A DNA stretch of 64,000 bases from Octopus sinensis (Eukaryota), in contig NC_042999.1 of the NCBI RefSeq assembly GCF_006345805.1, positions 137,020,001 to 137,084,000 on the forward strand, written 5' to 3'. This document shows positions 75 to 50,172 of this stretch, in pieces. Under the pieces are notes generated by a model, which was not told the DNA's origin, ran no database searches, and worked only from the letters and a program-made list of their open reading frames with translations. The translations under genes were made by a program, and so were the position numbers. Within the stretch, counting starts at the first letter, position 1. Each line of letters opens with the position of its first letter.

Positions 75-111
<37 letters not shown>

Positions 112-19180: not shown

Positions 19181-21163
19181 TTTCTTTTGAGTTGACAAAC
19201 TGTCACCATAACTGTCATAGTCTTTCCCATGCTAAAAAAAAAAAAAATTTTGACAATTTAAATTTGCTGAATGACCCCACTCCCCATATTTGGCAAACCA
19301 AATGTTATACATATCTCAAGTACAATTTAATACTGATTTTGGTTCCTCAAAAATTAGTAATATTTTTTAATGAAATATTGCAGCAACACATTTTCAGGCA
19401 AAACAACAATCTATCACCCCCATCCACTGTGATTTAACTTCCTTAATAATGCAACAATTTTTAGAGAGTACAGAATTAGTCGATTAGGCACAGGTGTGGA
19501 TGTGTGGTAAGAAGTTTGCTTCCCAACCATATGGTTCTGGGTTCACTGGCTGCATGGCACTTTCGGCAAGTGTCTTCTACTGTAGCCTCAGGCCAAACAA
19601 AGCCTTGTGAACGGATTAGGTAGACAGAAACTGGAAGAAGCCCATCATATATATTGTGTGTGTACATAATTTATATAAAATATTGGTTGATTAATTCAAT
19701 TAAAAAAAATTCAAGGTAGTGCCCCAGCATGGCCTGAAACAAGAATAGATTTAACATAAAAAAAAAAAAAATTCTGCTGTGAAAGCTTGTCATGTTTCAC
19801 CAGTTTAAATAACATCCAGAAATCAAGACTCGTCTCCAAAACACTAAAATCTACATCTTCAGTTCAAATGTGAAGTAAGTCCATCATTGTATGGAACTTT
19901 TCTTCAACAATAGAAATAAACCCAATTAGTTGTCAATATAGAAATCAGAGAAAGAAAGTGGCACTGGACACAATCTCAGTACAGGCAGTTGCTCAGAAGA
20001 AACCTGCAGAGAAAAAGGAAGAGAGGAATGCTAAGGAACTGTATATACTGATGGATATAGCCCCCCCCCCCCCCCTGTACGTTTGTCTGAAAATACTGTC
20101 CAACAGTCAGCAAGAACCAATGGCTGAAATGTTTATCAGTCATACATAGAAGTATCACTAAACTCAAGTCAAAAGTCTGTTTTAGAGAATGATCAACACA
20201 CTTCTTTGTATAACTGAACACACGTGGACATGCCTACAAAGTCAGAAAACAACACAGCTCCCATGACTTTCGGAAACATTTTTTCACGCTCAGAGTTGCT
20301 GAAGCATGGAATAAACTGCCTGCGTCAGTTGTTGACTGCCATGACACTGCATCCTTTAAGGCCCTCATGCTTTCCGAAATCCGCCGAAACTACACCTGAT
20401 TATATATACACGTTAGATGAGTTGTAGTGCACCTGAGCACTGTGCACAATTATTTTTATTATTATTATTATTTTAAAAACAATTTAGATTCTGTTTATGC
20501 ATAACAATTAGAAGCAGTATTATCAAACTTGCCTTGTTGGGAATTTCAAGCAGCTAACCATTCTAGATAAACTGCATACTAATGCAGGGAGAGAAAAATA
20601 AATATTTTTTTCCTCTTTTATATTAATGACCTATTTGCTGTTACCTCTAACAAATTTCATTCTTTTGCAAAGTATACCACTTTTCACTCCAACACACTAG
20701 CACCATCAATTCCATTCCAACCCATATTTTTGTTATAGGCATCTAACTTGAAGCTATTCAAGCTACATATAACTACATCAATCTGACTAGGTACATAAAG
20801 CCTATGTAGATTATGTGCATAAGCCACTTAACTAAAAACCTTAAAACAAAAACATCACATGCTTGACTAAGCACCCACATCTAAATATGCTATCAATAAA
20901 CAAATGGGCAAAAGTGGCTGGCCTCACTGCTCATTACCAAACTCATTTATAACAATAAACTTTGAATACAACGTAATATTTTGAAAAATAAACTAAATTC
21001 CAAATCAAAATGTTCACTTACAAAGTGAAGACATTTTGGCATATCTGAGAGAGAAAGTGGGGTAGGGAAGGAGACATCTTTTCCCACATTAAAAACAAGC
21101 ATTTCACTTTGTTAAAAAGACAACACTCAGAAAAACTTGAATTAGAAATATTGCATAAAAAAT

Positions 21164-24100
21164 TTATTTGTCAGCTGACGCTTTTGAAACAGCAAATGGT
21201 TCATCTACTGGAAGTGATCCACAATCTGCAATGATAACTGGAACTACAGGTCGATTTTGTTCACCAGTCTTAGTATTTTCAATTTCACGAACCACTTTCT
21301 GCAATTAAAAGACAAATTAATTAAAATGTTGTAAAACAATATTAGAGACTTGGTAACGAAAATCTGCTTCTGATATTATCATTAAAACTGGAGAAGTGAG
21401 CCTCTGATTTTCATACTTCTATCATAAAGCAAGAACAGCACGGTAATCTTCGTAGGCTTTCTCACATAGGTGACTCAGAATAATCAAAAGGTGTTGTTTG
21501 TTTAACTCTTTAGCATTTAAACCAGCTATATCTGGCCCAAACTGGCCAGATTTGGCCTCTCACATCTACTGAACAATGTCATATTAGAATTACGCAATCA
21601 CATCATCAAAATTTCAAAGCTGTGAAATAATGCATGATTAATTCAAAGCAATGTAAGTAAATAAACATTACATTTGGTGGAATAGTTTGAATGCTAAAAG
21701 GTCAAATAGACATTAGCAAGAATTTAGTGTAACACCAGCTATAATATAATGTTAAAAAATACAAAAATAACTTGCAAAAAGATTTACCTAGAAATTATAA
21801 GACAACAGGTGCAAGAAAAACATTTCTGACAAGCACTACTGCTCATAAAGCTTATTGAAAAATGAAGTAAAGAAAATAGGACATCAATGGTATCTTACCA
21901 TCCCTTCAAGGACTTTACCAAAAACAACATGGCGTCCATCAAGCCACTCAGTTATCTTAGTGGTAATGAAGAACTGTGAACCATTTGTATCTTTGCCAGC
22001 ATTTGCCATCGACAGCCAGCCAGCTCCATAGTGCTTTAGCTTGAAGTTTTCATCAGAGAATTTCTCACCATATATACTGACACCTAAGTGGAATCAATGA
22101 AAATAGATATTATATAAAGGTAGTAAATCAGAAATAGCAACAATCTAAAAAGAAGGGTGATAGGATAGTGGTGGTTATGGTAAAATAGTGAATCCAGAAT
22201 AAATTATCCAATTAGAAAAAGATCAAAAATTGATTAACCATTTTCCCTTTAGCAGTTTTGGCATCAAGGCAGGTTGCATTTAAAAATTCAAATATTTACA
22301 TGAAAGACATAGCCGTTTTAAATCACGATTTTTAGTGTCTTTATTATTAGATTTCTGGCAAAGTATACTGAGGTTTCCTTATCAAAGGATGTGTATTTGG
22401 CTTTTAATTGGATTCAAAAAGGTAAGGCAGTGGTCATGACTTTTACAGGCCTCAACTGACTGGTGACATTGATTCTAAGAAGGACTAAGCAAAGTATTTG
22501 GCAAGTATTGAGACAGTAGAGATGACAAGAAGAGAGAACAAAAGCTTGCTAGTTCAGAGGAATAGAAGCCATTATAGTAACAGGAGAGGAGATTTCAGTT
22601 ACTAGCTCACAGAATGCCTATGAGCATTTGTCAATCAACTGAAAAGGTTTAGAATGTTTACGTAAATTGTAACAGCAGCAATGTCCTGTACAGATAAGGG
22701 GTGTTTTAATGTTGGTCACACTTGAGCTTTGTAGAAGATCAGCACAAAACAGGGATGCTGTCACAGTGTAATCTGCTACTCTTTTGATAGAAGTATTAAC
22801 ATTCATTTTGACATTAATACAAAAGCCTACGCTTTTAGGGATAGAAAAACAAGGAGGTATTTAAATTCTATATTTTATTGAGAGACATTAGCCTTGCAAA
22901 TGAAATTGGCAGTCTCATCATATCCTTTCAGTGTAGTCATTTGTACAATACATCTGATTCCTCTTATATTCCATTTTTCTTTTAGATTATTTCCACATAC
23001 ATCAGAACAGACTTGCCTCCATTTCTTTCCATCCTTAATACATTTTCTGCATTCAATGTCCATTTTTTACTACCATGTAATATCGAGAATCATACAATTT
23101 ACCATTCACTTGTAGAAAGAATCCCTTTCTTGCCAAATCTTTTCCACTTTACTTATTCTGGATAGTTTGCTTTTAGAAAAGACCCCATCGCTACTGATTT
23201 GGCCACTTAGGAAACAAGCTGTCGACTATATTTTGGGAACCTGACTGTCTTTATAAACCAACTTATGATGTTGTGAACCTGTAGTTTATATGGGGTACAC
23301 AGTACAGAATTCCTTCTTACTCCTACTGAGTGTGGCCACCTCCCAGATTCTAGAGTCAAGTCTTCCATCTGCAATTTTTGTCATTGCTCTCAAGCCACTC
23401 AGTTCTAAACCTCCCCTCCACATATGGAATTTCTCTCATTCTTACATAGATTCAGCTAGAAGATCTAAGTAAGTCATCAGTATATGGAAGTTTCCACAAT
23501 CAGCCAGTCTTAAGCTCCTCTGCTGTTGTCTGTAAAACTATAATAGACAAGAGTGTGCTGAGAGCTAAGGCCTTTTAACATACAGCTGAACTCTAAATTC
23601 CTTCCTGAATTCATGTTAATACTCACCTTGTGTACATCATGTCTGTACATGGTTAGAATGGTTCTCAAAAGCAATTCATCTCTTAGCTTCCTTTATGATA
23701 CAAGAACAAAGAGTACCCTATGGAAAGCCTTATCCACTTCAGGGAATGGTAGCACTGGTGCTCCATCCTAGTACAAACTCAATATCTTAATTCATTGCAT
23801 TTTAACTAAATAGGATGTTCTATTTCACCAGATAATTTTCTTTCCATTGTATAGCCATCAACTGCAGTTGCTGATTGATCCCTATGGAAAGTCTAATTGG
23901 GCTCTCTTCTTTGCACTCTTCATTTCATAACATCCCTCAGTAGCATTAGCATTTTCATGCCTCTTTTTGACATCAGTGAACACCAGTATGCTGCTGTTAC
24001 TACACAACTTCACTCCAAAGGCATCCTGATTTATACCAATATACTGCTTAGCAATCCAAAACACATCATGCCTCAGATCATTACAGAACATCAGCAAACT

Positions 24101-27100
24101 CTTTAGATTTTCTGTTAGCTACCTGCTTTTTTTTCCAGGTTTTTCTCTAACTGTGCAACAGAAAATACTTACCTCCAGTTCCATCACCTTTGGTGAAATC
24201 ACCACCTTGGATCATAAATGCAGGAATGACACGATGAAAAGAACTTCCCTTATATGTTAATGGTTTATCACCTTTGGTCTGAAAAGAAATTAAAAGCATT
24301 CAAGTTAACATATTGCAAAAAGATAGATAACAACCAAGTTAATATCACTCACATCAATTGTTTTACAGCTAAGTAAAAACTTATTGTATCATATTTATAA
24401 GATTGCCTGGTAAAAGAGCTAAAATATGCTATATAGTAGTATTCTGTTGACATTCCATTTGCATATAAACATACTTTCATTAAGTCTGACTAGATGAAAT
24501 AGAAGAATTAGACGCTTCCTTATTCACAGTGCTATACCAATTTTTCAGCATATTGAACCAAAGAGAAAAATGATTTACCAAGCAATATTACTGCTTCATT
24601 ATGTGAGCTAAGAATCAACACTAGTTATATCTCAATTGGTGTTTACTTATCACGTTCAGATTTCCAAATGAGTTAATCCACAATGTTTCTATTCATGATT
24701 TCATATAATGCAGCAAATGCACAATATTCAAATTAAGGTATTACACTGACAAATTTCTTTCCAGTTCATTTAATATTCTAGATGTACAACTGTCCACAAC
24801 AGTTGACATTCTTTCAACAGGACATCAAAGTTGAATGAACAGAGATAAAGTTGTTCTTAAATACAATTACAAAAGTTACATAAAGGCATCAGCCAGCTCT
24901 TAAATATTTTGACAAAAAAAAAAAAATTTCTATTTCCAACACTTCAAAAGTGACTGAAGCAGTTACGAGTCACCTTCTCTAACACCATGAGTCTCTTTCT
25001 GCAATCACCACTATATTTTCTGCATAGCCAGATCTACTGTGACCTACTTTCCTAAGTCCTCCACTTTCAGAAATGTGGTATAAAAAATGGTATTTTGCAT
25101 ACAATACACCAATCTTCTGGCTAAATCACCTGTCCATCATTACTAACTGACTATTCTCTTGGGTTGGCAAGATCAAACTATTTACTAAATAGCAATGTGG
25201 ATCATGTGTGTATGTGTGGTCTTCAGCATTCAATTTTTTTAATTTTTAATGATTAAAATTCAGAAATATAGGATTACCATAGTTCCTTCAGCTAAAGTTT
25301 TGAAATTTTTGACGGTTTTAGGAACAGTCTTGCCAAACAGTCCAATCACAATTCGACCAGCAGGCTTATCACCAATCTTTATGTCAAAAAAGACCTGGTA
25401 AAAATAAGAAACAAAAAATGTGTGTATAAACTTATACACATAGAAAGTACATGTAATCTCAAAAGTGGCTAGCTTGATATGTAGGAAAGGAGTTGGTAAG
25501 AACTTGATATTGTATATTCAGTGGAATATGCCTGCATATGTATACCCATGTTTTAACATTGGTAATATACCTGTAGTATAATATGGATACTCTTACCCTT
25601 CATAGACTTATTTTAACTCTGATTCAGCTAAATGTTGTATATACATATATATACACAATATATATGGATAGCTATATATACACAATATATATGGATAGCT
25701 ATATAAACACAATATATATGGATATATATATATATACACAATATATATGGATATATACACACAAAATATATAAGTACACACACACATATACATGCATATA
25801 TACATACACACATATACATACATACATGCAAACAGGCATACATATACACAAACAGACATATATACACACAAACAAGGATATATACACATGCAAATATACA
25901 CTTACATATATACACATACACACATATATCCATACATATATGCTGTAATTGAGATCTATTGACATGCTGTACTTGAGGAAACCTATTGAATCCAGTAACA
26001 TCAAAATTAAATCCAATGAAAACTGTACTTGTGGCCGATGCCAGTGCTGCCTGACTGGCTCCCTCTGCCTGTAGCACATAAAATCCACCATCCTAACTTG
26101 GTCGATGCCAGCAACTCCAGCCCCCAACACAACTGGCTCCTCTGCCGGAAGCACGTAAAAAGCACCATCCAAACATGGGCGATGCCAGTACCATGTGACT
26201 GGAACTCATGCCAACTACATGGAGTGGTTGGCGTTAGGAAGGGCATCCAACTGTAGAAACATTGCCACATCAGATTGGAACCTCGTGCCGTAACCTGGAT
26301 AGCCAGTCATCATATATATACATAGACACACATATATACACCCATATATATATACACACACACATGTGAAATTTACAAAAAAACAAAAGATGAAGACAGG
26401 TATATAAACAAATAGGTGTACTAGTTTGATACTTGGGAAGGTGAGTAAGTCTTTTATGTTTCAAGCCTATGCTCTTCAATAGAAAGGGACACAAGGAAAT
26501 AAACAGAGAGATTTAAAAAATCATAGCAACTGTTTGGAAGAAGGCAGTTAGACAGGAGAGCTAGGAAGAAGGGGAAATAATAAAGTACTGGTGATCCCAA
26601 AATGAAGGCGTGCATGCCTGTATGTGAGAATGTAATTATGTGCATGTGGAGAGGGCCTAGTGACATTGACATGTGGGGTGACGTGATGTGGTGGGGGATT
26701 GTGAGGATGGCATGTGGGTTTGGGGTGAGGATGGGTTGGGGTATGTGGGAGTGGAATATGGATGGAATGGGCATACATACACATGTATATACATATAATA
26801 ATGATTCTTGATAGAATCAGGTACTTAAGGATATGCACTTGGTCGTGTTGGATAAACCTCCAGCCCCCCACACAACTGGCTCCTCTGCCAGAAGCACGTA
26901 AAAAGCACCATCCAAACATGGGCAATGCCAGTACCACGTGACTGGCACTCGTGCCAACTGCATGGAGTGGTTGGCGTTAGGAAGGGCATCCAACTGTAGA
27001 AACATTGCCACATCAGATTGGAACCTACTGCAGTAACCTGGTTACCCAGTCATCATATATATACATACATATACACACACACACACACATGTGAAATTTA

Positions 27101-30100
27101 CAAAAAAACAAAAGATGAAGCAGGTGTATAAACAAGTAGGTGTACTAGTTTGATACTTGGGAAGGTGAGTAAGTATTTTATGTTTCAAGCCTATGCTCTT
27201 CAATAGAAAGGGACACAGGGAAATAAACAGAGAGAATTAAAAAATCATAGCAACTGTTTGGAAGAAGGGGAAATAATAAAGTACTGGTGATCCCAAAACG
27301 AAGGTGTGCATGCCTGTATGTGAGAGTGTAATTATGTGCATGTGGAGAGGGCCTAGTGACGTTGACGTGTGGGGTGATGTGATGTAGTGGGGGATTGTGA
27401 GGATGGGTTGGGGTATGTAGGCATGGAATGTGTGGGAGTGGAATATGGATGGAATGGGTATACATACACATGTAAATACATATAATAATGATTCTTGATA
27501 GAATCAGGTACTTAAGAATATGCACTTGGTCGTGTTGGATAAACCTGTGATCACCACATACCAGAACGATATTCAGGATGTGCATACAGAGAAAACCACT
27601 TCTAAGAGTATTAAGCGTCAAGGGGCTGGCCCAAAGTACATGGTGTATTGATCATACATTGTTTAGTATACTCCATGGTGTCCAACTTATCATGAATCCC
27701 TATGGTGTATTATAAACAAATGAATAATAACAGATGATGGATAAATGTCAGTTCATTACAGCCATTTCTTATACGTTTTTTATAGAAGAAATGAGTAAAT
27801 TACATCACTTCAAAACAAAAGACCATAACCATCAGATGAAACAATTTCAAAGCTATAGCGTATCCTGGATATTCTATTGTTTTGAAATTATGTTTTATCT
27901 GATGATAATGGACTTTTTCAAGTGATGTAACGTACTCATTTTTCTATTACAAATGTGTAAGAAACAGTTGTAATGAGCTGACATTTGTCCATCGTTTGCT
28001 ATTATTTGCTTATATATTATATATATGTACTAGCAGTATCGCCCAGCGTTACTCGGGTTTGTAAGGGAAATAACTATAAAGCATTTTTAGAGAGTTATAG
28101 CCAAAAAATAGCAAAAAAATGGAGAAAAAATGGTAAATTTTTTTTTAAATCGTTGACTCATCATAGACATTTTTAGAGAGTTACTTCCCTTATATAATAG
28201 CGAAAAAATGCATTAAAATGGGAAAAAAATTATTTTAAAAACCGTAGATGCGCGCTAATACCCAGAAGGGCTCGATATGAATCACGACTATATGATACTC
28301 GGTTTTGGTTAAACTGCACCACAAAATGTGGGAGTAGTTAGGAATCTAAATCGTAGGAGACAGACACACAACCTCACTTTTATATATAAAGATATATAAT
28401 TGGGAATTGAAAAAGAGTAATTTCCTACATACTTCACTTTAATAAATGTTCTCCAATGTGTACCTGTTGGTGAAATATAAGTTTAGATTTACAAGAAAGT
28501 GATTTTTCAATTTTTATATTTGAAAGGCTCCCCATGTGTAGTTGTGCGTTAATACACTGTTGCTGAGCAACTAGTTCCCATGTGTCACACAATGAAGTTG
28601 TTCTTCAAAGTCTATTCATTTGTTGATGATAAAGCTAAAATTCTGAATGAAATGAAAGTTTTCCCACATACTTCATAGTTAAACAACTTTTCTCTGGTGT
28701 GCATTATATTTTGTTAAAAGATTGAGGCAAATGATTTCCTACTTGTTTTATGAAAGACAATGTCTACCTTGATGGAATTTGAACTCAGAATGTAAAGAGA
28801 GAAGAAATGCTGCAAACAATAATAATAGATGGTTGGTGGCTAGCATCACAGAAAAAAAAAGAAACTGAAGAATTGTGATGATAGAATTTATGGAATTAAA
28901 ACAAAAGTAATGGCTAGTAGACAGCTGATCATCATGTGTAGGAGATTGTGAAACTTGGTTGATAGCGAATATATGATTTGGTGCTAGAAGTCTCCACACA
29001 TACACAACAGCCTTCTGATACTGTAAACACACATAGACAATTCCTGAAGCAGGCCATGGAGATACAGTCATAGGTACACAGCGTTTCTAAAATAGTAATA
29101 ATTATAACCATAGTAATTATAATAGATATGAAAATTGCAACAATAAAAGCTGCAAACTATGGCACATAGTGTTTTTTTTGCGGGGTGGGGGGGATCAGTT
29201 CAATACTTCAATCCCAGTGATTGACTGATACTCATTCCATTAACCTTGAAAGAATGAAGGTATATTTGATCTCCATAGTATTGGAACTCATAATGCAAAG
29301 AGCCAGAAAAAAATGTCGCTCAGCCCTTTTTCTGCCATTTGCCACCTTAATATCAATAATATACAACATAAAATAAAAGGACCCATGTCCTTCAGTTTCT
29401 TCTTTCCTTTCTTCTTGTGATGCTGACCACTAGCTGTCTATTACTATTTTTTCTTAATGTTTTTTTACTACCTTTGTTTCTGGTCTTATTAAATAAAAAA
29501 ACAACAGCACAGTTAAAACAATTGTTATAATCTTTTGGAAAAATGAAAATACAAAGAAAAAAATAGATGTATTAAATCAGTGTACCTTACATCACACTTG
29601 ATTTCTTTAGAGGAAAATGAGAAAAGTAGATTTTTAACAGTACTGCGCAAGAAAGACTGACAGATATACAGGGTGTTTAGGATAAATCTTACAATTATTT
29701 TATGTCTCCTTTTTACAGAAATAGTTTGATGTATTGAAAGAGTCAATGGCATTAGAAAGTATAAAAATAAATGTTGAGGTTGAGAAAAAGTTAGCTGACC
29801 TGGAAGATTGGAAACCATCTGAGTCAATTACTGTGTTATGATATGCACCAGGTATCCAAATGCTGACATCATGATTGCTGCTCAATTCTCTATGAACTTT
29901 GTAAAGGCTGTAAAATGTGACGTGGATAGCTGCAACCGAGACTGTGAAGCTGTAGCCAGCATGAAGGGACACAGCAAGTGTTCTGTGTCTGTACACCAGA
30001 ATTCATCTCCACATCTTTGAACAGGGTCTTAAACTCAATTTAGTTGGCTATGTGAAGCTGCTGGAGCCTATAGTCAATCCCTGACTCGAAAGGATTGCTG

Positions 30101-32335
30101 CAGGAAGGCCAAATGTGTGGCAGCAGGATTCAGTTCCTTGCCATGCCTCCAGAAAGTGTCAGTCAGAGAATTTCTACGACTTTACCAACCCCAATTTTTG
30201 GTCTCTTAATTCTACCAATTGTAATCCCATACTATGGGATTACCTGTGAGGGGCGTAGTTGAGAAAGGCAACAACTGTTCTGCCTGAAACACCAAGAACA
30301 AGCTGGTGGCCAAGATCAAGGGGTTCGAAGATCTTCCCAGAGATACAGAGAGATAGGCATGTGCTAGATTCCAGAGCTGTCTTGAGGCCAGCTACTTTGA
30401 GTAAATTATCTCCCAGCAATAATCTAGTCATTATTTTAAGAATATTTTTTTTTAATACTTTTATTTTTGAATGGGATATTATGTTTTCTGTTCTTTTTAT
30501 CCAAACTGTTAAATTTAGCCTTAACACACTATAGCAGTAAGAATCAGATCGGGCAAGAAGACACGGTAATGAGACTATATGGAGAGGTGAAATTGTTGCA
30601 GGTGGATGAAGAATGAGGGTATCAGATTATATATAATTATTCACTTCCCGTTTTAAGTTGGTACAATTCCGTACTGTTTCTGAAATTAAAAGTATCACTA
30701 CTCATAGACGCACGATTTTAATTCTTTTGTTCTGGTAAATGAATGCGATCACGCTGGGATTTTATCGTCGTAAAAGGTTTATTTGATCAAATCGACTAAA
30801 ATAACCAAAGTAAGGGTAAGTTTTCCGCCTACTTTTTATTATTACACCGCCAGTGTTCAGCGGGCTTTCGGAATAGTTATTGTGACCTCATGGAGAAGGA
30901 AAAGAGCAAGGGTGGTGGTTTCCTTGTGAAATTTTTTTTTGTTCAAAATATTTTAATTTTTACCCATATCATAATTTCGTGTACTTTTTAGATAAGTTTT
31001 ACTGTTACACCCGTCACTTTAAAAATAAGTAGTGGGCTCGATTTGAGTGACTAAACCCTTTACGGCAATGCCCCAGTTTGGCCAAGTCAACTACTGAATA
31101 ATGAAATGTGTGTACGTGTGTAAGAAAAGTGACAGTTTCAGAAAGTAAAAATGCACCATCTCAAAGAGGTGGGAAGTATACGTATTTTCTAGAGAAAATA
31201 CTGGGTATCTCAAATAAACCAAAGCTATCTCATAATATACAGGAAACGTGGAGTGACTAGGACACGTCGGTCAAGCCTACATTTAGACTTTTGTCAGTTT
31301 CAACGTACGCCTTTAGTCGGTCCAACGAAAGTCTCTGAATTGTGAGCAAATAATTGGGTCTTTATACCCTTAGCGTAAATTTCAGGTAAACTAACCGTAA
31401 AATAGTTACAACCATTGCTCAAACTGCTCGAAATAGCAGCCGAATTCCCTCCGATACACTATTCTTGATATAGAAATAGGAGAAAAATAACCCATTGCAT
31501 ACAGATTATTTAATAGAATTTGAAGCTGAGAATTCACTCTGTCGATACTGGAGTTCCTCATTAAGTGCGAACTATCTGCAGATAGCACGTAGCAAGAAAA
31601 TGTTGTAGTAGACCGTATCAGAAGTATTGAACGAGTGTGTGCGTTTATACACATACACTATATATACATTACAGTATAGATATATGGTATAGCTGTCGTC
31701 AGACAAATGAAATTCATACGAATTCAATGAAAATAATTAAGCGAATATCTCTTTTCATGCACATCTGTTAAAACAAATTTTGTTGCTTATAAATGAAGTG
31801 CTTGCACACGAATTTAACTTTTACCAGTAGAAGTAATGTGGTTAAGATTTTTTTTCTATCAATTATTGTGGTCGTTAATGATTAATATGAAAAATATTAA
31901 ATAAAGTGATTGCGTTTGTCTTGCTTTGTCTAAAACGAAGTTACAGAGCGTTCATCCCAGTAGACTTGTTCATATAAAACAGTGTTTCACAGCAAAGGAA
32001 TATGAGAATCGGTAGAGCATCGAATCAAATATTTTACAGTATGCAGTTATATCTTTTTATATTTCCAGTTCAAATCCGACTTAGCCCTAAATACCGGGTG
32101 TGCGTATTTTTTTCTTTCGCCAAATACTGAGTTAGAATCAACTGTTCCCTCCCCCACAAACAGCTAGTGTGCTTATGCTAAAAAAAAAATCAATTATTTA
32201 TTGTATATGTAATAGCAGTTGCAGAAAAAGTCTACTTACTTTATCAGTGACTTTAGGTCCTTTAGGTTTGGCTGTAGTAGACAAGAAAGCCGGAATTAGA
32301 GAGAGAAACAACACAAACGACAACAACTTCATCAT
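21164..32335 (-). CDS. PPIB: Peptidyl-prolyl cis-trans isomerase B (cyclophilin B), left-arm copy, 212 aa
   Basis: Exons 32335-32240, 25394-25278, 24278-24173, 22083-21899 and 21298-21164, all GT-AG, open frame. Signal peptide [22 protein letters not shown], then [60 protein letters not shown] and the CypB-type C-terminus VDEPFAVSK. Confidence 0.95.
26119..27546 (+). repeat. Left-arm-specific tandem duplication (~740 and ~690 bp units) in PPIB intron 1
   Basis: Junction ggataaacct|ccagcccc at 26859/26860. Only one, partly deleted unit is present in the right arm (42260-42730). Confidence 0.85.
28030..28392 (-). mobile_element. Non-autonomous Helitron, left-arm specific, in PPIB intron 1
   Basis: Minus strand reads A|TCTTTATATATA ... 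cccgagtaacgctggg hairpin ... CTAG|T (AT target, no TSD). Absent at the right-arm site near 41775. Confidence 0.85.
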
Positions 32336-37738: not shown

Positions 37739-37822
37739 GACCGGTGTAACGTCAGAAGTAAAAGTGACGTGTCGTTTCTTGACCGGTGTAACGTCAGAAG
37801 TAAAAGTGATGTGTCGTTTCTT
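37739..37822 (+). repeat. 42-bp tandem duplication in the PPIB promoter containing CRE-like half-sites (also in the left arm, ~32635-32718)
   Basis: gaccggtgtaacgtcagaagtaaaagtga(c/t)gtgtcgtttctt, two copies. Confidence 0.85.
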
Positions 37823-38121: not shown

Positions 38122-41100
38122 ATGATGAAGTTGTTGTCGTTTGTGTTGTTTCTCTCTCTAATTCCGGCTTTCTTGTCTACTACAGCCAAACCTAAAGGAC
38201 CTAAAGTCACTGATAAAGTAAGTAGACTTTTTCTGCAACTGCTATTACATATACAATAAATAATTGATTTTTTTTTTTAGCATAAGCACACTAGTTGTTT
38301 GTGGGGGGGGGGGAACAGTTGATTCTAACTCAGTATTTGGCGAAAGAAAAAAATACGCACACCTGGTATTTAGGGCTAAGTCGGATTTGAACTGGAAATA
38401 TAAAAAGATATAACTACATACTGTAAAATATTTGATTCGATGCTCTACCGATTCTCATATTCCTTTGCTGTGAAACACTGTTTTATATGAACAAGTCTAC
38501 TGGGATGAACGCTCTGTAACTTCGTTTTAGACAAAGCAAGACAAACGCAATCACTTTATTTAATATTTTTCATATTAATCATTAACGACCACAATAATTG
38601 ATAGAAAAAAAATCTTAACCACATTACTTCTACTGGTAAAAGTTAAATTCGTGTGCAAGCACTTCATTTATAAGCAACAAAATTTGTTTTAACAGATGTG
38701 CATGAAAAGAGATATTCGCTTAATTATTTTCATTGAATTCGTATGAATTTCATTTGTCTGACGACAGCTATACCATATATCTATACTGTAATGTATATAT
38801 AGTGTATGTGTATAAACGCACACACTCGTTCAATACTTCTGATACGGTCTACTACAACATTTTCTTGCTACGTGCTATCTGCAGATAGTTCGCACTTAAT
38901 GAGGAACTCCAGTATCGACAGAGTGAATTCTCAGCTTCAAATTCTATTAAATAATCTGTATGCAAAGGGTTCTTTTTCTCCTATTTCTATATCAAGAATA
39001 GTGTATCGGAGGGAATTCGGCTGCTATTTCGAGCAGTTTGAGCAATGGTTGTAACTATTTTACGGTTAGTTTACCTGAAATTTACGCTAAGGGTATAAAG
39101 ACCCAATTATTTGCACACAATTCAGAGACTTTCGTTGGACCGACTAAAGGCGTACGTTGAAACTGACAAAAGTCTAAATGTAGGCTTGACCGACGTGTCC
39201 TAGTCACTCCGCGTTTCCTGTATATTATGAGATAGCTTTGGTTTATTTGAGATACCCAGTATTTTCTCTAGAAAATGCGTATACTTCCCACCTTTTTGAG
39301 ATGGTGCATTTTTACTTTCTGAAAAGTAGGCGGAAAACTTACCCTTACTTTGGTTATTTTAGTCGATTTGATCAAATAAACCTTTTACGACGATAAAATC
39401 CCAGCGTGGTCGCATTCATTTACCAGAACAAAAGAATTAAAATCGTGCGTCTATGAGTAGTGATACTTTTAATTTCAGAAACAGTACGGAATTGTACCAA
39501 CTTAAAACGAGAAGAGAATAATTATATATAATCTGATACCCTCATTCTTCATCCACCTGCAACAATTTCACCTCTCCATATAGTCTCATTACCGTGTCTT
39601 CTTGCCCGATCTGATTCTTACTGCTATAGTGTGTTAAGGCTAAATTTAACAGTTTGGATAAAAAGAACAGAAAACATAATATCCCATTCAAAAATAAAAG
39701 TATTAAAAAAAAATATTCTTAAAATAATGACTAGATTATTGCTGGGAGATAATTTACTCAAAGTAGCTGGCCTCAAGACAGCTCTGGAATCTAGCACATG
39801 CCTATCTCTCTTTATCTCTGGGAAGATCTTCGAACCCCTTGATCTTGGCCACCAGCTTGTTCTTGGTGTTTCAGGCAGAACAGTTGTTGCCTTTCTCAAC
39901 TACGCCCCTCACAGGTAATCCCATAGTATGGGATTACAATTGGTAGAATTAAGAGACCAAAAATTGGGGTTGGTAAAGTCGTAGAAATTCTCTGACTACC
40001 ACTTCTGACACTTTCTGGAGGCATGGCAAGGAACTGAATCCTGCTGCCACACATTTGGCCTTCCTGCAGCAATCCTTTCGAGTCAGGGATTGACTATAGG
40101 CTCCAGCAGCTTCACATAGCCAACTAAATTGAGTTTAAGACCCTGTTCAAAGATGTGGAGATGAATTCTGGTGTACAGACACAGAACACTTACTGTGTCT
40201 CTTCATGCTGGCTACAGCTTCACAGTCTCGGTTGCAGCTATCCACGTCACATTTTACAGCCTTTACAAAGTTCATAGAGAATTGAGCAGCAATCATGATG
40301 TCAGCATTTGGATACCTGGTGCATATCATAACACAGTAATTGACTCAGATGGTTTCCAATCTTCCAGGTCAGCTAACTTTTTCTCAACCTCAACATTTAT
40401 CTTTATACTTTCTAATGCCATTGACTCTTTCAATACATCAAACTATTTCTGTAAAAAGGAGACATAAAATAATTGTAAGATTTATCCTAAACACCCTGTA
40501 TATCTGTCAGTCTTTCTTGCGCAGTACTGTTAAAAATCTACTTTTCTCATTTTCCTCTAAAGAAACCAAGTGTGATGTAAGGTACACTGATTTAATACAT
40601 CTATTTTTTTCTTTGTATTTTCATTTTTCCAAAAGATTATAACAATTGTTTTAACTGTGCTGTTGTTTTTTTATTTAATAAGACCAGAAACAAAGGTAGT
40701 AAAAAAACATTAAGAAAAAATGGTAATAGACAGCTAGTGGTCAGCATCACAAGAAGAAAGGAAAGAAGAAACTGAAGGACATGGGTCCTTTTTATTTTAT
40801 GTTGTATATTATTGATATTAAGGTGGCAAATGGCAGAAAAAGGGCTGAGCGACATTTTTTTCTGGCTCTTTGCATTATGAGTTCCAATACTATGGAGATC
40901 AAATATACCTTCATTCTTTCAAGGTTAATGGAATGAGTATCAGTCAATCACTGGGATTGAAGTATTGAACTGATCCCCCCCACCCCGCAAAAAAAAACAC
41001 TATGTGCCATAGTTTGCAGCTTTTATTGTTGCAATATTCAAAGCTATTATAATTACTATGGTTATAATTATTACTATTTTAGAAATACTGTGTACCTTTG

Positions 41101-44100
41101 ACTGTATCTCCATGGCCTGCTTCAGGAATTGTCTATGTGTGTTTACAGTATCAGAAGGCTGTTGTGTATGTGTGGAGACTTCTAGCACCAAATCATATAT
41201 TTGCTATCAACCAAGTTTCACAATCTCCTACACATGATGATCAGCTGTCTACTAGCCATTACTTTCATTTTAATTCCATAAATTCTATCATCACAATTCT
41301 TCAGTTTCTTTTTTTTTCTGTGATGCTAGCCACCAACCATCTATTATTATTGTTTGCAGCATTTCTTCTCTCTTTACATTCTGAGTTCAAATTCCATCAA
41401 GGTAGACATTGTCTTTCATAAAACAAGTAGGAAATCATTTGCCTCAATCTTTTAACAAAATATAATGCACACCAGAGAAAAGTTGTTTAACTATGAAGTA
41501 TGTGGGAAAACTTTCATTTCATTCAGAATTTTAGCTTTATCATCAACAAATGAATAGACTTTGAAGAACAACTTCATTGTGTGACACATGGGAACTAGTT
41601 GCTCAGCAACAGTGTCTTAACGCACAACTACACATGGGGAGCCTTTCAAATATAAAAATTGAAAAATCACTTTCTTGTAAATCTAAACTTATATTTTACC
41701 AACAGGTACACAATGGAGAACATTTATTAAGGTGAAGTATGTAGGAAATTACTCTTTTTCAATTCCCAATTATATATGCATATATATAATATATAAGCAA
41801 ATAATAGCAAACGATGGACAAATGTCAGCTCATTACAACTGTTTCTTACACATTTTTAATAGAAAAATGAGTACATTACATCACTTGAAAAGACCATTAT
41901 CATCAGATAAAATATAATTTCAAAACAATAGAATATCCAGGATACGCTATAGCTTTGAAATTGTTTCATCTGATGGTTATGGTTTTTTTTTTAAGGTGAT
42001 GTAATTTACTCATTTCTTCCATAAAAAACGTATAAGAAATGGCTGTAATGAACTGACATTTATCCATCATCTGTTATTATTCATTTGTTTATAATACACC
42101 ATAGGGATTCATGATAAGTTGGACACCATGGAGTATACTAAACAATGTATGATCAATACACCGTGTACTTTGGACCAGCCCCGTGACGCTTAATACTCAT
42201 AGAAGTGGTTTTCTCTGTATGCACAACCTGAATATCGTTCTGGATATTTAATTGACCAAAGGTGGTGATCACAGGTTTATCCAACACGACCAAGTGCATA
42301 TTCTTAAGTACCTGATTCTATCAAGAATCATTATATATATATATACATGTGTATGTATACCCATTCCATCCATATCCCACTCCCACACATTCCATGCTCA
42401 CATACCCCCAACCCATCCTCACCCCAAACCCACATGCCATCCTCACAATCCCCCACCACATCACATCACTCCACATGCACATAATTACACTCTCACATAC
42501 AGGCATGCACACCTTCGTTTTGGGATCACCAGTACTTTATTATTTCCCCTTCTTCCAAACAGTTTGTATGATTTTTTAATTCTCTCTGTTTATTTCCCTG
42601 TGTCCCTTTCTATTGAAGAGCATAGGCTTGAAATATAAAATACTTACTCAGCTTCCCAAGTATCAAACTAGTACACCTACTTGTTTATACACCTGTCTTC
42701 ATCTTTTGTTTTTTTGTAAAAATGACTGGGTAACCAGGTTACTGGCATCGGCCACAAGTGCAGTTTTCATTGGATTTAATTTTGATGTTACTGGATTAAA
42801 TAGGTTTCCTCAAGAACAGCGTGTCAATAGATCTTCTCAATTACAGCATATATGTATAAATATATGTGTGTATGTATATATGTAAGTGTATATTTGCATG
42901 TGTATATATCCTTGTTTGTGTGTATATATGCCTGTTTGTGTATATGTATGCCTGTTTGCATGTATGTATGTATGTATATATGCATTATATATATGTGTGT
43001 GTGTGTACTTGTGTATACTCTCTTACTCTTTATTCTCTTACTTGTTTCAGTCATTTGACTGTGGCCATGCTGGAGCATCGCTTTTAATCGAACAGCTTGA
43101 CCCCAGGACTTATTCTTTTGTAAGCCCAGTACTTATTCTATCGGTCTCTTTTGCCGAACCGCTAAGTAAAGGGGACACAAACACACCAGCATCGGTTGTC
43201 AATCAATGCTAGGGGAACAGACACACAAACACACACACGCATATATATATATATATATATATACATATATACGCCGGGCTTCTTTCAGTTTCTGTCTACC
43301 AAATCCACTCACAAGGCTTTGGTCGGCCCGAGGCTATAGTAGAAGACACTTGCCCAAGGTGCCACGCAGTGGGACTGAACCCGGAACCATGTGGTTGGTA
43401 AACAAGTTACTTACCACACAGCCAATCCTGCGCCTATGTATGTATATATTCTTCATATATTTTGTGTGTATATATCCATATATATTGTGTATATATATAT
43501 ATCCATATATATATTGTGTATATATATGTATGTATATGTATATACAACATTTAGCTGAATCAGAGTTAAAATAAGTCTGTGAAGGATAAGAGTATCCATA
43601 TTATACTACAGGTATATTACCAATGTTAAAACATGGGTATACATATGCAGGCATATTCCACTGAATATACAATATCAAGTTCTTACCAACTCCTTTCCTA
43701 CATATCAAGCTAGCCACTTTTGAGATTACATGTACTTTCTATGTGTATAAGTTTATACACACATTTTTTGTTTCTTATTTTTACCAGGTCTTTTTTGACA
43801 TAAAGATTGGTGATAAGCCTGCTGGTCGAATTGTGATTGGACTGTTTGGCAAGACTGTTCCTAAAACCGTCAAAAATTTCAAAACTTTAGCTGAAGGAAC
43901 TATGGTAATCTTATATTTCTGAATTTTAATCATTAAAAATTTAAAAATTTGAATGCTGAAGACCACACATACACACATGATCCACATTGCTATTTAGTAA
44001 ATATTTTGATCTTGCCAACCCAAGAGAATAGTCAGTTAGTAATGATGGACAGGTGATTTAGCCAGAAGATTGGTGTATTGTATGCAAAATACCATTTTTT

Positions 44101-47100
44101 ATACCACATTTCTGAAAGTGGAGGACTTAGGAAAGTAGGTCACAGTAGATCTGGCTATGCAGAAAATATAGTGGTGATTGCAGAAAGAGACTCATGGTGT
44201 TAGAGAAGGTGACTCGTAACTGCTTCAGTCACTTTTGAAGTGTTGGAAATAGAAATTTTTTTTTTTTTGTCAAAATATTTAAGAGCTGGCTGATGCCTTT
44301 ATGTAACTTTTGTAATTGTATTTAAGAACAACTTTATCTCTGTTCATTCAACTTTGATGTCCTGCTGAGAGAATGTCAACTGTTGTGGACAGTTGTACAT
44401 CTAGAATATTAAATGAACTGGAAAGAAATTTGTCAGTGTAATACCTTAATTTGAATATTGTGTATTTGCTGCATTATATGAAATCATGAATAGAAACATT
44501 GTGGATCAACTCATTTGGAAATCTGAACGTGATAAGTAAACACCAATTGAGATATAACTAGTGTTGATTCTTAGCTCACATAATGAAGCAGTAATATTGC
44601 TTGGTAAATCATTTTTCTCTTTGGTTCATTTGCTGAGAAATTTGTATAGCACTGTGAATAAGGAAGCGTCTAATTCTTCTATTTCATCTAGTCAGACTTA
44701 ATGAAAGTATGTTTATATGCAAATGGAATGTCAACAGAATACTACTATATAGCATATTTTAGCTCTTTTACCAGGCAATCTTATAAATATGATACAATAA
44801 GTTTTTACTTAGCTGTGAAACAATTGATGTGAGTGATATTAACTTGGTTGTTATCTATCTTTTTGCAATATGTTAACTTGAATGCTTTTAATTTCTTTTC
44901 AGACCAAAGGTGATAAACCATTAACATATAAGGGAAGTTCTTTTCATCGTGTCATTCCTGCATTTATGATCCAAGGTGGTGATTTCACCAAAGGTGATGG
45001 AACTGGAGGTAAGTATTTTCTGTTGCACAGTTAGAGAAAAACCTGGAAAAAAAAGCAGGTAGCTAACAGAAAATCTAAAGAGTTTGCTGATGTTCTGTAA
45101 TGATCTGAGGCATGATGTGTTTTGGATTGCTAAGCAGTATATTGGTATAAATCAGGATGCCTTTGGAGTGAAGTTGTGTAGTAACAGCAGCATACTGGTG
45201 TTCACTGATGTCAAAAAGAGGCATGAAAATGCTAATGCTACTGAGGGATGTTATGAAATGAAGAGTGCAAAGAAGAGAGCCCAATTAGACTTTCCATAGG
45301 GATCAATCAGCAACTGCAGTTGATGGCTATACAATGGAAAGAAAATTATCTGGTGAAATAGAACATCCTATTTAGTTAAAATGCAATGAATTAAGATATT
45401 TAGTTTAGGTGAGTGTTTGAGTTTGTACTAGGATGGAGCACCAGTGCTACCATTCCCTGAAGTGGATAAGGCTTTCCATAGGGTACTCTTTGTTCTTGTG
45501 TCATAAAGGAAGCTAAGAGATGAATTGCTTTTGAGAACCATTCTAACCATGTACAGACATGATGTACACAAGGTGAGTATTAACATGAATTCAGGAAGGA
45601 ATTTAGAGTTCAGCTGTATGTTAAAAGGCCTTAGCTCTCAGCACACTCTTGTCTATTATAGTTTTACAGACAACAGCAGAGGAGCTTAAGACTGGCTGAT
45701 TGTGGAAACTTCCATATACTGATGACTTACTTAGATCTTCTAGCTGAATCTATGTAAGAATGAGAGAAATTCCATATGTGGAGGGGAGGTTTAGAACTGA
45801 GTGGCTTGAAAGCAATGACAAAAATTGCAGATGGAAGACTTGACTCTAGAATCTGGGAGGTGGCCACACTCAGTAGGAGTAAGAAGGAATTCTGTACTGT
45901 GTACCCCATATAAACTACAGGTTCACAACATCATAAGTTGGTTTATAAAGACAGTCAGGTTCCCAAAATATAGTCAACAGCTTGTTTCCTAAGTGGCCAA
46001 ATCAGTAGCGATGGGGTCTTTTCTAAAAGCAAACTACCCAGAATAAGTAAAGTGGAAAAGATTTGGCAAGAAAGGGATTCTTTCTGCAAGTGAATGGTAA
46101 ATTGTATGATTCTTGATATTACAAAGTGCATATTACATGGTAGTAAAAAATGGACATTGAATGCAGAAAATGTATTAAGGATGGAAAGAAATGGAGGCAA
46201 GTCTGTTCTGATGTATGTGGAAATAATCTAAAAGAAAAATGGAATATAAGAGGAATCAGATGTATTGTACAAAAGACTACACTGAAAGGATATGATGAGA
46301 CTGCCAATTTCATTTGCAAGGCTAATGTCTCTCAATAAAATATAGAATTTAAATACCTCCTTGTTTTTCTATCCCTAAAAGCATTGGCTTTTGTATTAAT
46401 GTCAAAATGAATGTTAATACTTCTATCAAAAGAGTAGCAGATTACACTGTGACAGCATCCCTGTTTTGTGCTGATCTTCTACAAAGCTCAAGTGTGACCA
46501 ACATTAAAACACCCCTTATATGTACAGGACATTGCTGCTATTACAATTTACATAAACATTCCAAACCTTTTCAGTTGATTGACAAATGCTCATAGGCATT
46601 CTGTGAGCTAGTAACTGAAATCTCCTCTCCTGTTACTATAATGGCTTCTATTCCTCTGAACTAGCAAGCTTTTGTTCTCTCTTCTTGTCATCTCTACTGT
46701 CTCAATACTTGCCAAATACTTTGCTTAGTCCTTCTTAGAATCAATGTCACCAGTCAGTTGAGGCCTGTAAAAGTCATGACCACTGCCTTCATCGTTGTTT
46801 AGCGTCCGTTTTCCATGCTAGCATGGGTTGGACGGTTCTACTGGGGTCTGTGAAGCCAGAAGGCTTCATCAGGCCCAGTCAAATCTGGCAGTGTACCTAC
46901 GGCTATCTTTTTGAATCCAATTAAAAGCCAAATACACATCCTTTGATAAGGAAACCTCAGTATACTTTGCCAGAAATCTAATAATAAAGACACTAAAAAT
47001 CGTGATTTAAAACGGCTATGTCTTTCATGTAAATATTTGAATTTTTAAATGCAACCTGCCTTGATGCCAAAACTGCTAAAGGGAAAATGTTTAATCAATT

Positions 47101-48261
47101 TTTGATCTTTTTCTAATTGGATAATTTATTCTGGATTCACTATTTTACCATAACCACCACTATCCTATCACCCTTCTTTTTAGATTGTTGCTATTTCTGA
47201 TTTACTACCTTTATATAATATCTATTTTCATTGATTCCACTTAGGTGTCAGTATATATGGTGAGAAATTCTCTGATGAAAACTTCAAGCTAAAGCACTAT
47301 GGAGCTGGCTGGCTGTCGATGGCAAATGCTGGCAAAGATACAAATGGTTCACAGTTCTTCATTACCACTAAGAAAACTGACTGGCTTGATGGACGCCATG
47401 TTGTTTTTGGTAAAGTCCTTGAAGGGATGGTAAGATACCATTGATGTCCTATTTTCTTTACTTCATTTTTCAATAAGCTTTATGAGCAGTAGTGCTTGTC
47501 AGAAATGTTTTTCTTGCACCTGTTGTCTTATAATTTCTAGGTAAATCTTTTTGCAAGTTATTTTTGTATTTTTTAACATTATATTATAGCTGGTGTTACA
47601 CTAAATTCTTGCTAATGTCTATTTGACCTTTTAGCATTCAGACTATTCCACCAAATGTAATGTTTATTTACTTACATTGCTTTGAATTAATCATGCATTA
47701 TTTCACAGCTTTGAAATTTTGATGATGTGATTGTGTAATTCTAATATGACATTGTTCAGTAGATGTGAGAGGCCAAATCTGGCCAGTTTGGGCCGGATAT
47801 AGCTGGTTTAAATGCTAAAGAGTTAAACAAACAACACCTTTTAATTATTCTGAGTCACCTATGTGAGAAAGCCTACAAAGATTACCGTGCTGTTCTTGCT
47901 TTATGATAGAAGTATGAAAATCAGAGGCTCACTTCTCCAGTTTTAATGATAATATCAGAAGCAGATTTATATTCAGCTCCTTCACCTTTTAACTAACTTA
48001 TAGGAATACAATACACTTTGCTGATTTTTGAGATTGAAACCTGTGGTTCCATCACTGGAAGATTTTTGTTAGTAAGTCTCTAATATTGTTTTACAACATT
48101 TTAATTAATTTGTCTTTTAATTGCAGAAAGTGGTTCGTGAAATTGAAAATACTAAGACTGGTGAACAAGATCGACCAGTAGTTCCAGTTATCATTGCAGA
48201 TTGTGGATCACTTCCAGTAGATGAACCATTTGCTGTTTCAAAAGCGTCAGCTGACAAATAA
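38122..48261 (+). CDS. PPIB: Peptidyl-prolyl cis-trans isomerase B (cyclophilin B), right-arm copy, 212 aa
   Basis: Exons 38122-38217, 43788-43904, 44903-45008, 47245-47429 and 48127-48261 (TAA), all GT-AG. Same motifs as the left copy, with canonical KKTDWLDG and DRP. An in-frame upstream ATG lies at 38062. Confidence 0.96.
43020..43436 (-). mobile_element. Full-length tRNA-derived SINE (ggcgcagg..ggtaagaag family), right-arm specific
   Basis: Same family as 2192-2537, 13434-13471 + 16104-16225, 19485-19645, 49785-49930, 55140-55525, 56560-56690 and 63935-64000. Absent at the left-arm site near 25790. Confidence 0.85.
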
Positions 48262-50172
48262 ATTTTTTATGCAATATTTCTAATTCAAGTTTTTCTGAGT
48301 GTTGTCTTTTTAACAAAGTGAAATGCTTGTTTTTAATGTGGGAAAAGATGTCTCCTTCCCTACCCCGCTTTCTCTCTCAGATATGCCAAAATGTCTTCAC
48401 TTTGTAAGTGAACATTTTGATTTGGAATTTAGTTTATTTTTCAAAATATTACGTTGTATTCAAAGTTTATTGTTATAAATGAGTTTGGTAATGAGCAGTG
48501 AGGCCAGCCACTTTTGCCCATTTGTTTATTGATAGCATATTTAGATGTGGGTGCTTAGTCAAGCATGTGTAATGTTTTTGTTTTAAGGTTTTTAGTTAAG
48601 TGGCTTATGCACATAATCTACATAGGCTTTATGTACCTAGTCAGATTGATGTAGTTATATGTAGCTTGAATAGCTTCAAGTTAAATGCCTATAACAAAAA
48701 TATGGGTTGGAATGGAATTGATGGTGCTAGTGTGTTGGAGTGAAAAGTGGTATACTTTGCAAAAGAATGAAATTTGTTAGAGGTAACAGCAAATAGGTCA
48801 TTAATATACAAGAGGAAAAAATATTTATTTTTCTCTCCCTGCATTAGTATGCAGTTTATCTAGAATGGTTAGCTGCTTGAAATTCCCAACAAGGCAAGTT
48901 TGATAATACTGCTTCTAATTGTTATGTACAAACAGAATCTAAATTGTTTTTAAAATAATAATAATAAAAATAATTGTGCACAGTGCTCAGGTGCACTACA
49001 ACTCATCTAAAGTGTATATATAATCAGGTGTAGTTTCGGCGGATTTCGGAAAGCATGAGGGCCTTAAAGGATGCAGTGTCATGGCAGTCAACAACTGACG
49101 CAGGCAGTTTATTCCATGCTTCAGCAACTCTGAGCGTGAAAAAATGTTTCCGAAAGTCATGGGAGCTGTGTTGTTTTCTGACTTTGTAGGCATGTCCATG
49201 TGTGTTTAGTTATACAAAGAAGTGTGTTGATCATTCTCTAAAACAGACTTTTGACTTGAGTTTAGTGATATTTCTATGTATGACTGATAAACATTTCAGC
49301 CATTGGTTCTTGCTGACTGTTGGACAGTATTTTCAGACAAACGTACAGGTTTGGGGGGTGGGCTATATCCATCAGTATATACAGTTCCTTAGCATTCCTC
49401 TCTTCCTTTTTCTCTGCAGGTTTCTTCTGAGCAACTGCCTGTACTGAGATTGTGTCCAGTGCCACTTTCTTTCTCTGATTTCTATATTGACAACTAATTG
49501 GGTTTATTTCTATTGTTGAAGAAAAGTTCCATACAATGATGGACTTACTTCACATTTGAACTGAAGATGTAGATTTTAGTGTTTTGGAGACGAGTCTTGA
49601 TTTCTGGATGTTATTTAAACTGGTGAAACATGACAAGCTTTCACAGCAGAATTTTTTTTTTTTATGTTAAATCTATTCTTGTTTCAGGCCATGCTGGGGC
49701 ACTACCTTGAATTTTTTTTAATTGAATTAATCAACCAATATTTTATATAAATTATGTACACACACAATATATATGATGGGCTTCTTCCAGTTTCTGTCTA
49801 CCTAATCCGTTCACAAGGCTTTGTTTGGCCTGAGGCTACAGTAGAAGACACTTGCCGAAAGTGCCATGCAGCCAGTGAACCCAGAACCATATGGTTGGGA
49901 AGCAAACTTCTTACCACACAGCCACACCTGTGCCTAATCGACTAATTCTGTACTCTCTAAAAATTGTTGCATTATTAAGGAAGTTAAATCACAGTGGATG
50001 GGGGTGATAGATTGTTGTTTTGCCTGAAAATGTGTTGCTGCAATATTTCATAAAAAAATATTACTAATTTTTGAGGAACCAAAATCAGTATTAAATTGTA
50101 CTTGAGATATGTATAACATTTGGTTTGCCAAATATAGGGAGTGGGGTCATTCAGCAAATTTAAATTGTCAAA

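Follow-up and report, generated by a model that had tools for sequence, protein, structure and literature searches.

An inverted segmental duplication with two cyclophilin B genes shared by Octopus sinensis and Octopus vulgaris

A PPIB gene in each arm of a 31-kb inverted repeat

The window analysed here is a 64-kb stretch of Octopus sinensis DNA without Ns (64,000 nucleotides of contig NC_042999.1, positions 137,020,001 to 137,084,000 of the forward strand; all coordinates below are those of the window), in which two genes for cyclophilin B (PPIB) lie in the arms of a long palindrome. The arms were defined by minus-strand self-BLAST of the whole window, and exons were located by a translated search with a cyclophilin B sequence as the query. 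At the BLAST level the self-comparison holds a single dominant inverted repeat, 19249-33748 against 36708-50172, in agreement with the 31-kb palindrome that an earlier reading, made by a model from the letters alone (the sequence-only reading), had placed at 19249-50172. For an inverted match of 14 kb, chance is not an issue. The arms and the genes within them are as follows.

19249..33748, minus strand: left arm, outer to inner, from minus-strand self-BLAST; in the ancestral 3' context, adjoining a downstream DEAD-box helicase gene
36307..36499, plus strand: inner continuation of the left arm, from alignment; holds a 54-bp repeat (36446-36499) and a 90-bp left-specific insertion (36356-36445)
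36581..50172, plus strand: right arm, inner to outer; the new, inserted copy; abuts non-palindromic sequence at 50172/50173
21164..32335, minus strand: PPIB-L gene; exons 32240-32335, 25278-25394, 24173-24278, 21899-22083 and 21164-21298; 212 aa
38122..48261, plus strand: PPIB-R gene; exons 38122-38217, 43788-43904, 44903-45008, 47245-47429 and 48127-48261; 212 aa
37680..38121, plus strand: promoter-proximal block of PPIB-R; mirrored at 32336-32777 (minus strand) with 100% identity; contains a 42-bp x2 repeat

With an inserted retrotransposon excluded and the inner apex included, the arms measure 14,693 bp and 13,592 bp and are 98.56% identical over aligned pairs, with a substitution divergence of 1.14% in clean columns and 39 indel events between them (18 of at least 10 bp, 10 of at least 50 bp). 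Arms of about 14.5 and 13.5 kb at about 99% identity, with structural differences, had been described from the letters, and that description was accurate. Large arm blocks are 97.5-99.2% identical; in a repeat-rich zone of intron 1 (25772-28027 and 41779-43016) identity is just 83-94%.

The full five-exon PPIB gene with intact splice sites that had been claimed for each arm is present in both: the two genes are divergently oriented, every intron has GT-AG boundaries, and each has an intact 212-aa open reading frame (ORF). Their coding sequences differ at exactly four positions, the number given earlier. These are CDS nucleotides 449, 456, 547 and 555, and the changes are K150I, D152E, D183N and one synonymous change. 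PPIB-L has the derived residues I150, E152 and N183, while PPIB-R of O. sinensis retains the ancestral K150, D152 and D183.

The products equal RefSeq XP_029633390.1 (PPIB-L) and XP_029633393.1 (PPIB-R), each minus an extension from an upstream ATG; RefSeq names the two PPIB and PPIB-like and records the cyclophilin-type peptidyl-prolyl isomerase domain PF00160 for both proteins. A motif check by eye found WLDGRH and a further cyclophilin motif in both copies, the closest solved structures are of PPIB (8k0f_C, E=9.6e-88, then 3ich and 1cyn), with PPIC (1e-73) and PPIA (1e-57) behind, and the N-terminus is hydrophobic by sequence, making it a candidate endoplasmic reticulum (ER) signal peptide. 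Upstream of the ATG, 446 bp are identical between the arms, about 110 bp of which are conserved in Argonauta, and each copy may have its own promoter. Since the ORFs, splice sites and catalytic residues are intact and the promoter-proximal sequence is identical, it is plausible that these are two functional secretory-pathway cyclophilin B genes, and, if both function, raised PPIB dosage is plausible too.

Several features of the promoters and gene models are of separate interest. The 42-bp x2 tandem repeat (32633-32718 and 37739-37824) lies about 300-380 bp upstream of each ATG and contains ACGT-core motifs, GTAACGTCAG and GTGACGTGTC, that resemble sites of the bZIP/unfolded protein response type; the repeat may function as an element of an ER chaperone promoter. 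The RefSeq models, at 232 aa, begin at an upstream in-frame ATG (MERVLDYCNISHRRRRYFYI; 38062-38121, plus strand, and its left mirror), which would bury the signal peptide. A similar N-terminal extension (..ISHRRRR..) is present in the Argonauta model, and the extension reflects either a 5' leader that has been conserved or an annotation habit that recurs. For each of the O. sinensis copies the annotation includes 193-aa isoforms that skip exon 2 and so lose 39 aa from the cyclophilin fold; such an isoform is the sole annotated form of the right copy in Octopus vulgaris. The O. vulgaris model CAI9720101.1, 'dicer 2-1' (796 aa), fuses the left PPIB to the downstream DEAD/Helicase_C gene, and is probably a read-through annotation artefact.

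The apex, its loop and a LINE in one arm

The arms found by BLAST stand 2,959 bp apart owing to a long interspersed nuclear element (LINE) in the left one. The apex of about 400 bp between them (36307-36707) is itself palindromic, 36307-36499 mirroring 36581-36707, and within it a 54-bp perfect inverted repeat (36446-36499 and 36581-36634) encloses the centre of symmetry, the flanks of this repeat having three indels of 90, 13 and 12 bp.

36500..36580, no strand: central loop, the true spacer, 81 bp; symmetry centre at about 36540
33749..36306, minus strand: LINE (non-long-terminal-repeat retrotransposon) fragment, 2.56 kb; in the left arm only, flanked by TGTT/GTT

The spacer of about 280 bp reported by the sequence-only reading therefore has to be corrected to this 81-bp loop between 54-bp perfect repeats. 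Folded as single-stranded DNA, 36300-36710 is predicted to form a long hairpin (-104.8 kcal/mol, z = -19.6). The LINE noticed in the left arm is real: its reverse-transcriptase ORF (33820-35055, minus strand) matches PF00078 at E=1e-27, and the right arm shows the insertion site uninterrupted. The element lies 230 bp from the palindrome centre and, together with the apex indels, breaks the perfect symmetry to give an effective spacer of about 3 kb; we infer that the LINE and the apex indels stabilise the palindrome.

Tested as a possible miniature inverted-repeat transposable element, the apex repeat gave only a 39-bp match at 87% (17030-17068) and an 18-mer common to the promoters. This 18-mer, GGATCTTTTCCTTTTGAT, occurs four times, at 32510-32527 (minus strand), 36446-36463 (plus), 36616-36633 (minus) and 37930-37947 (plus), once in either half of the apex repeat and once in either promoter, the promoter copies lying 1.3 kb off and in opposite orientation, where chance would be expected to yield none. 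These copies may be the terminal repeats of an old element of about 1.3 kb.

The same palindrome in O. vulgaris

As a replicate we used the O. vulgaris assembly GCA_951406725.2 (OX597816.1), in which the two loci, reached via the two proteins in 90% clusters, were merged into 76 kb without Ns. This assembly comes from a different animal and was built from Oxford Nanopore reads with NextDenovo, Hypo polishing and purge_dups, in a genome with a heterozygosity of 1.22% (PMC10700109). The O. vulgaris locus is collinear with positions 1-58525 of the window at about 99%, and has the palindrome too, its arms (36243-50665 and 53625-67697) enclosing a 2,959-bp centre, as in the window. The 430 bp of the apex at 36290-36719 are 100% identical in O. 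vulgaris. All six junctions (the left outer end, both LINE ends, the loop and, at the right outer end, the two borders of a short inserted segment, X', described below) are present, four of them identical and the two LINE ends with 1-2 mismatches per 80 bp. Intact 212-aa ORFs are found in 4/4 copies (two arms in two species); K150I, D152E and D183N are fixed in the left copy of both species, and the right copy of O. vulgaris has K150I and E201Q.

The obvious concern with such a structure is an assembly artefact, in which a PPIB region that is really single-copy appears as an inverted pair, either because its two haplotypes were mis-joined or because a long read was a fold-back chimera. The divergence of the arms (1.14-1.34%) is near the genome heterozygosity of 1.22% (PMC10700109), and both assemblies were built from noisy long reads. 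The same structure is nonetheless present in two species, two animals, two platforms and two assemblers, with an identical apex, a one-armed LINE in both, and identical outer junctions; its outer flanks are two different unique sequences, unlike a fold-back contig end, and neither the window nor the O. vulgaris locus contains Ns. The arms differ by substitutions and indels, 81 of the substitutions being arm-specific in both species, and most of the arm-specific indels likewise being common to both. Because the same junctions, the one-armed LINE and the arm-specific differences recur across two species and platforms, a mis-join or chimeric read is excluded by the cross-species comparison, and we regard the chance that it explains the locus as negligible. 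The locus is confirmed as a real inverted duplication carrying two intact, divergently oriented PPIB genes, as the sequence-only reading had held. Since the LINE stands in one arm and its junctions are present in O. vulgaris, its insertion is later than the duplication and earlier than the species split.

Outer junctions and a possible origin by template switching

The DEAD-box helicase gene lies next downstream of PPIB in both Octopus bimaculoides and Argonauta hians, as it does for the left copy. The gene order in these outgroups indicates that the left copy is in the ancestral context and the right arm is the new, inserted copy. The right outer end of the palindrome is not a clean boundary. 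The arm ends at 50172, the mirror of 19249, and is followed by a short direct copy (X') of sequence (X) that lies beyond the outer end of the left arm; unrelated flank begins after 50843.

17801..18876, plus strand: X, putative source of a templated insertion; unique and ancestral, on the downstream side of PPIB, and collinear with O. bimaculoides
50173..50843, plus strand: X', 0.67-kb direct copy of 17801-18876, without 18596-18747 and without a later SINE-like insert

The junction J2 (50172/50173) has a 2-bp AA microhomology, J1 lies at 50843/50844, and both are identical in O. vulgaris. Between X and the left arm, the 372 bp at 18877-19248 are unduplicated and have an A14 run as their last bases, exactly where the arm starts; most of this segment is present in O. 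bimaculoides, which makes it ancestral. Two other accounts of the boundary were considered and rejected: X and X' are not a boundary transposable element, X being unique and collinear with O. bimaculoides downstream sequence, and 18877-19248 is not a poly(A)-tailed short interspersed nuclear element (SINE) that postdates the duplication (with X' an in-place inversion), being mostly present in O. bimaculoides. Within X, O. sinensis alone has a 234-bp insertion (18155-18388), which neither O. vulgaris, O. bimaculoides nor the X' copy shares; the insertion has an inverted 92% copy in the right flank (51265-51423), and looks like a young SINE-type element.

The direct X' copy at the right outer junction points to a fold-back or template-switching origin, which might have run as follows. 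A break or stalled fork just upstream of PPIB would have let the nascent strand fold back or switch template at a short hairpin-forming site, now the 54-bp repeat and 81-bp loop. About 14.7 kb, comprising the promoter and five exons, would then have been copied outward up to the A14 run at 19249, where a second switch, to 17801 on the other strand with the 2-bp microhomology, would have led to about 1 kb being copied in direct orientation before a closing join of 18876 to the upstream flank at 50844. From the anatomy of these ends, a single replicative event with three junctions seems the likely course. A two-step origin would start from a simple palindrome reaching 17801, the outermost 1.4 kb or so of whose right arm was then inverted and 18877-19248 deleted. 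This would account for X' being the next-but-one segment past the arm end, flipped. It needs, though, an inversion plus a precise deletion of 372 bp, in a segment whose presence in O. bimaculoides means that it is not a later left-side insertion, whereas one multi-switch replicative event covers both junctions; we consider the two-step course improbable.

The arms have diverged since before the species split

To follow the arms since their duplication we aligned all four of them (two arms in each of O. sinensis and O. vulgaris) over 11,673 clean columns. The same arm differs by 0.57% between species, against 1.14-1.34% for different arms; 81 sites split left from right in both species, six split the species, and none is crossed. 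Most of the large indels between the arms are common to both species, and the flanks and the centre differ between species by 0.27-0.71%. There are also several stretches of about 1 kb without a fixed arm difference, among them those of exon 3 and of exon 1 together with the promoter. Given the 81 against six sites and the shared indels, the duplication predates the species split, and the arms have since been mostly independent.

The split of O. sinensis and O. vulgaris has been dated to 2.5 million years (My) ago (PMC10700109). Scaled by it, the duplication would be roughly 4-5.5 My old, a rough figure since polymorphism is large relative to divergence. A second alignment, with O. bimaculoides as the outgroup to polarise changes over 4,856 clean columns, has 258 derived sites in all four arms, 16 in the left arms only and 7 in the right arms only, from which it follows that the duplication, or the last homogenisation of its arms, is far younger than the O. 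bimaculoides split.

The best explanation of the locus is a genuine inverted segmental duplication of PPIB, apparently autosomal, that arose some 4-5.5 My ago in the common ancestor of O. sinensis and O. vulgaris by fold-back or template switching, to which we would give a probability of about 0.8. Three points count against this explanation or parts of it. Heterozygosity within species (1.22%) exceeds divergence between species (0.57%), which weakens the dating. Among 38 polarised singleton sites, 15 are derived in three of the four arms, when about one would be expected from double hits. Finally, the pre-duplication empty site is not seen in either outgroup, O. bimaculoides or Argonauta, and only the anatomy of the junctions speaks for the mechanism. 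Upstream of exon 2 the O. bimaculoides locus is riddled with Ns and gives no alignment, and its few right-flank matches are repeat-like; non-coding DNA of Argonauta aligns only at exons, core promoter and repeats.

The sites derived in three arms, among them K150I in the right copy of O. vulgaris, cluster by type (for example at 47374-48177, with sites 47374, 47641, 47734, 47877 and 48177) and are interleaved with unconverted sites as near as 7 bp. They suggest patchy arm-to-arm exchange, sorting of old polymorphism or cross-talk in short-read polishing, three causes that are not separable here. Together with the six species-specific shared sites they could be read as footprints of conversion, and the stretches of about 1 kb free of fixed arm differences could be read in the same way, as would be expected of a palindrome like those of sex chromosomes, in which frequent arm-to-arm gene conversion actively keeps the arms alike. 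Such upkeep, as on Y and W chromosomes, had been raised in the sequence-only reading and is not supported: the two arms of one species differ by 1.14-1.29%, within the 1.14-1.34% for different arms, which is about double the divergence of the same arm between species (0.57%), and 81/87 informative sites follow the arm rather than the species. Primate X palindromes behave in the opposite manner, with an arm divergence below 0.2% (PMC8327919). The putative footprints lie within 7 bp of unconverted sites, and polishing cross-talk or polymorphism sorting fits them equally well or better. We therefore hold ongoing conversion of this kind to be very unlikely; apart from a few patchy, ambiguous sites, there has been no homogenisation of the arms by conversion since the split.

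Conversion could instead belong to the past, in that a far older duplication, one preceding the split from O. bimaculoides at 13-34 My, had its arms kept alike up to some 5 My ago, at which point the LINE and the apex indels put an end to conversion. The 258 derived sites in all four arms are equally expected from past concerted evolution, and a short-read O. bimaculoides assembly, which is broken upstream of exon 2, would collapse near-identical arms; a long-read assembly of this species exists as well (PMC10925132). Against such an early origin, there is only one O. bimaculoides PPIB protein in the 90% cluster and one PPIB copy in the 25-kb O. bimaculoides locus, Argonauta hians has a single PPIB and shows no inverted counterpart in the 10 kb that precede exon 1, and nothing turned up that would positively favour an old copy. 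We consider this account unlikely. A look for further octopod PPIB loci or Logan transcript contigs found none on record for these proteins.

Comparison with known palindromes and inverted duplications

Palindromes with genes are best described from primate sex chromosomes, with P1-P8 on the Y and 26 on the human X (PMC8327919, PMC8600007), where the criteria are arms above 8 kb and an arm identity above 99% (PMC8327919). Like these, the octopus palindrome has arms longer than 8 kb (14,693 and 13,592 bp) with protein-coding genes inside, a very short spacer (81 bp; the human X range starts at 77 bp), and conservation between species. Unlike them, its arm identity, at 98.56%, is below 99%, it lacks concerted evolution, the arm-to-arm divergence being greater than that between species, and it is apparently autosomal and carries a housekeeping ER foldase rather than a testis-biased gene family. 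In octopuses the Z corresponds to chromosome 17 of O. bimaculoides and to the former chromosome 20 of O. sinensis (PMC10925132). The locus lies on CM016861.1 (174 Mb) in the O. sinensis assembly GCA_006345805.1 and on CM046603.1 (168 Mb) in O. bimaculoides. Judged by accession order only, these would be chromosomes 1 and 3, and it is on this order that the palindrome is taken as apparently autosomal.

In human fold-back inverted duplications (Hermetz et al. 2014, PMC3907307), as in the octopus, the inverted copy adjoins the original across a short single-copy spacer, and the junctions have microhomology on the 2-bp scale. The human cases are terminal: sequence is deleted and a telomere or translocation caps the end, whereas the octopus duplication is interstitial and closed by what would be a templated insertion. 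Spacers in the human cases mostly measure a few kb, against 81 bp here; and the human events are de novo and pathogenic, while the octopus event is fixed and millions of years old.

Inverted segmental duplications that carry genes are common. Replicative template switching, described as fork stalling and template switching or microhomology-mediated break-induced replication (FoSTeS/MMBIR), produces inverted duplications with templated insertions, of the duplication-inverted triplication-duplication type (DUP-TRP/INV-DUP). The octopus locus resembles these products in that several junctions lie close together, within a few kb, that a short direct copy of adjacent sequence accompanies the inverted segment, and that the junctions show microhomology; it differs in having no triplicated segment and no pre-existing pair of inverted low-copy repeats identified as a substrate. 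For an ancient, fixed event such as this one the FoSTeS/MMBIR mechanism is not verifiable.

A search of one literature library for PPIB in octopus and for palindromes in cephalopods found none. The locus is previously undescribed, yet it is an ordinary kind of inverted segmental duplication and opens no long-standing question. What it offers is a case in which an inverted duplication that looks suspect, in an invertebrate assembly made from noisy long reads, proves real, so that RefSeq PPIB and PPIB-like are true paralogues and not allelic redundancy, and should be treated as paralogues in orthology tables, copy-number estimates and RNA-seq mapping in O. vulgaris and O. sinensis. It also provides the fully resolved junctions of what appears to be an ancient interstitial fold-back or template-switch duplication, with its 81-bp loop, 2-bp microhomology and 0.67-kb candidate templated insertion, and shows concerted evolution to be unnecessary for the persistence of such a palindrome.

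A further reading, tentative and on balance unlikely, goes beyond this: an autosomal palindrome with an 81-bp spacer would have outlived more than 2.5 My and a speciation without homogenisation by virtue of the LINE 230 bp from its centre and of apex indels, which would have disrupted its symmetry shortly after it formed, and its PPIB copies would be at the start of functional divergence. As part of that same reading, the copy in the ancestral context would be the one to have fixed three changes, one of them at a lysine conserved in CypA and CypB, and the new copy would be the one to keep the ancestral protein. If true, the locus would be a dated natural example of a hairpin-prone gene palindrome that was stabilised and its genes partitioned.

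Flanking sequence and outgroup loci

Rfam and tRNA scans of the window returned no RNA genes. In its left flank, exon 1 of the helicase gene is a 238-aa ORF (11435-12151, minus strand). Between PPIB-L and this gene lies a second LINE reverse-transcriptase fragment (13977-14669, plus strand), which explains a GC-rich zone at 14000-16000 with a local GC of 0.48, as in the central LINE.

In O. bimaculoides, the PPIB model (CM046603.1) lacks exon 1 and reads intron 1 into exon 2. Positions 1-9900 of that locus, gappy upstream of exon 2, have no alignment to O. sinensis intron 1; this upstream gap is probably a scaffolding problem of a short-read-based assembly. The Argonauta hians PPIB locus is packed with interspersed and tandem repeats of about 160-600 bp, and has exon-1-like sequence twice in tandem, at 9934-10172 and 10487-10571.

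The left flank of the window also contains, at 7890-10289, a cluster of inverted repeats of about 410 bp (8710-9124, 9278-9691 and 9886-10289) that are 83-87% identical, and, at 423-715, a self-complementary stretch of 290 bp. Both are present in O. vulgaris, and look like nested copies of a repeat family.

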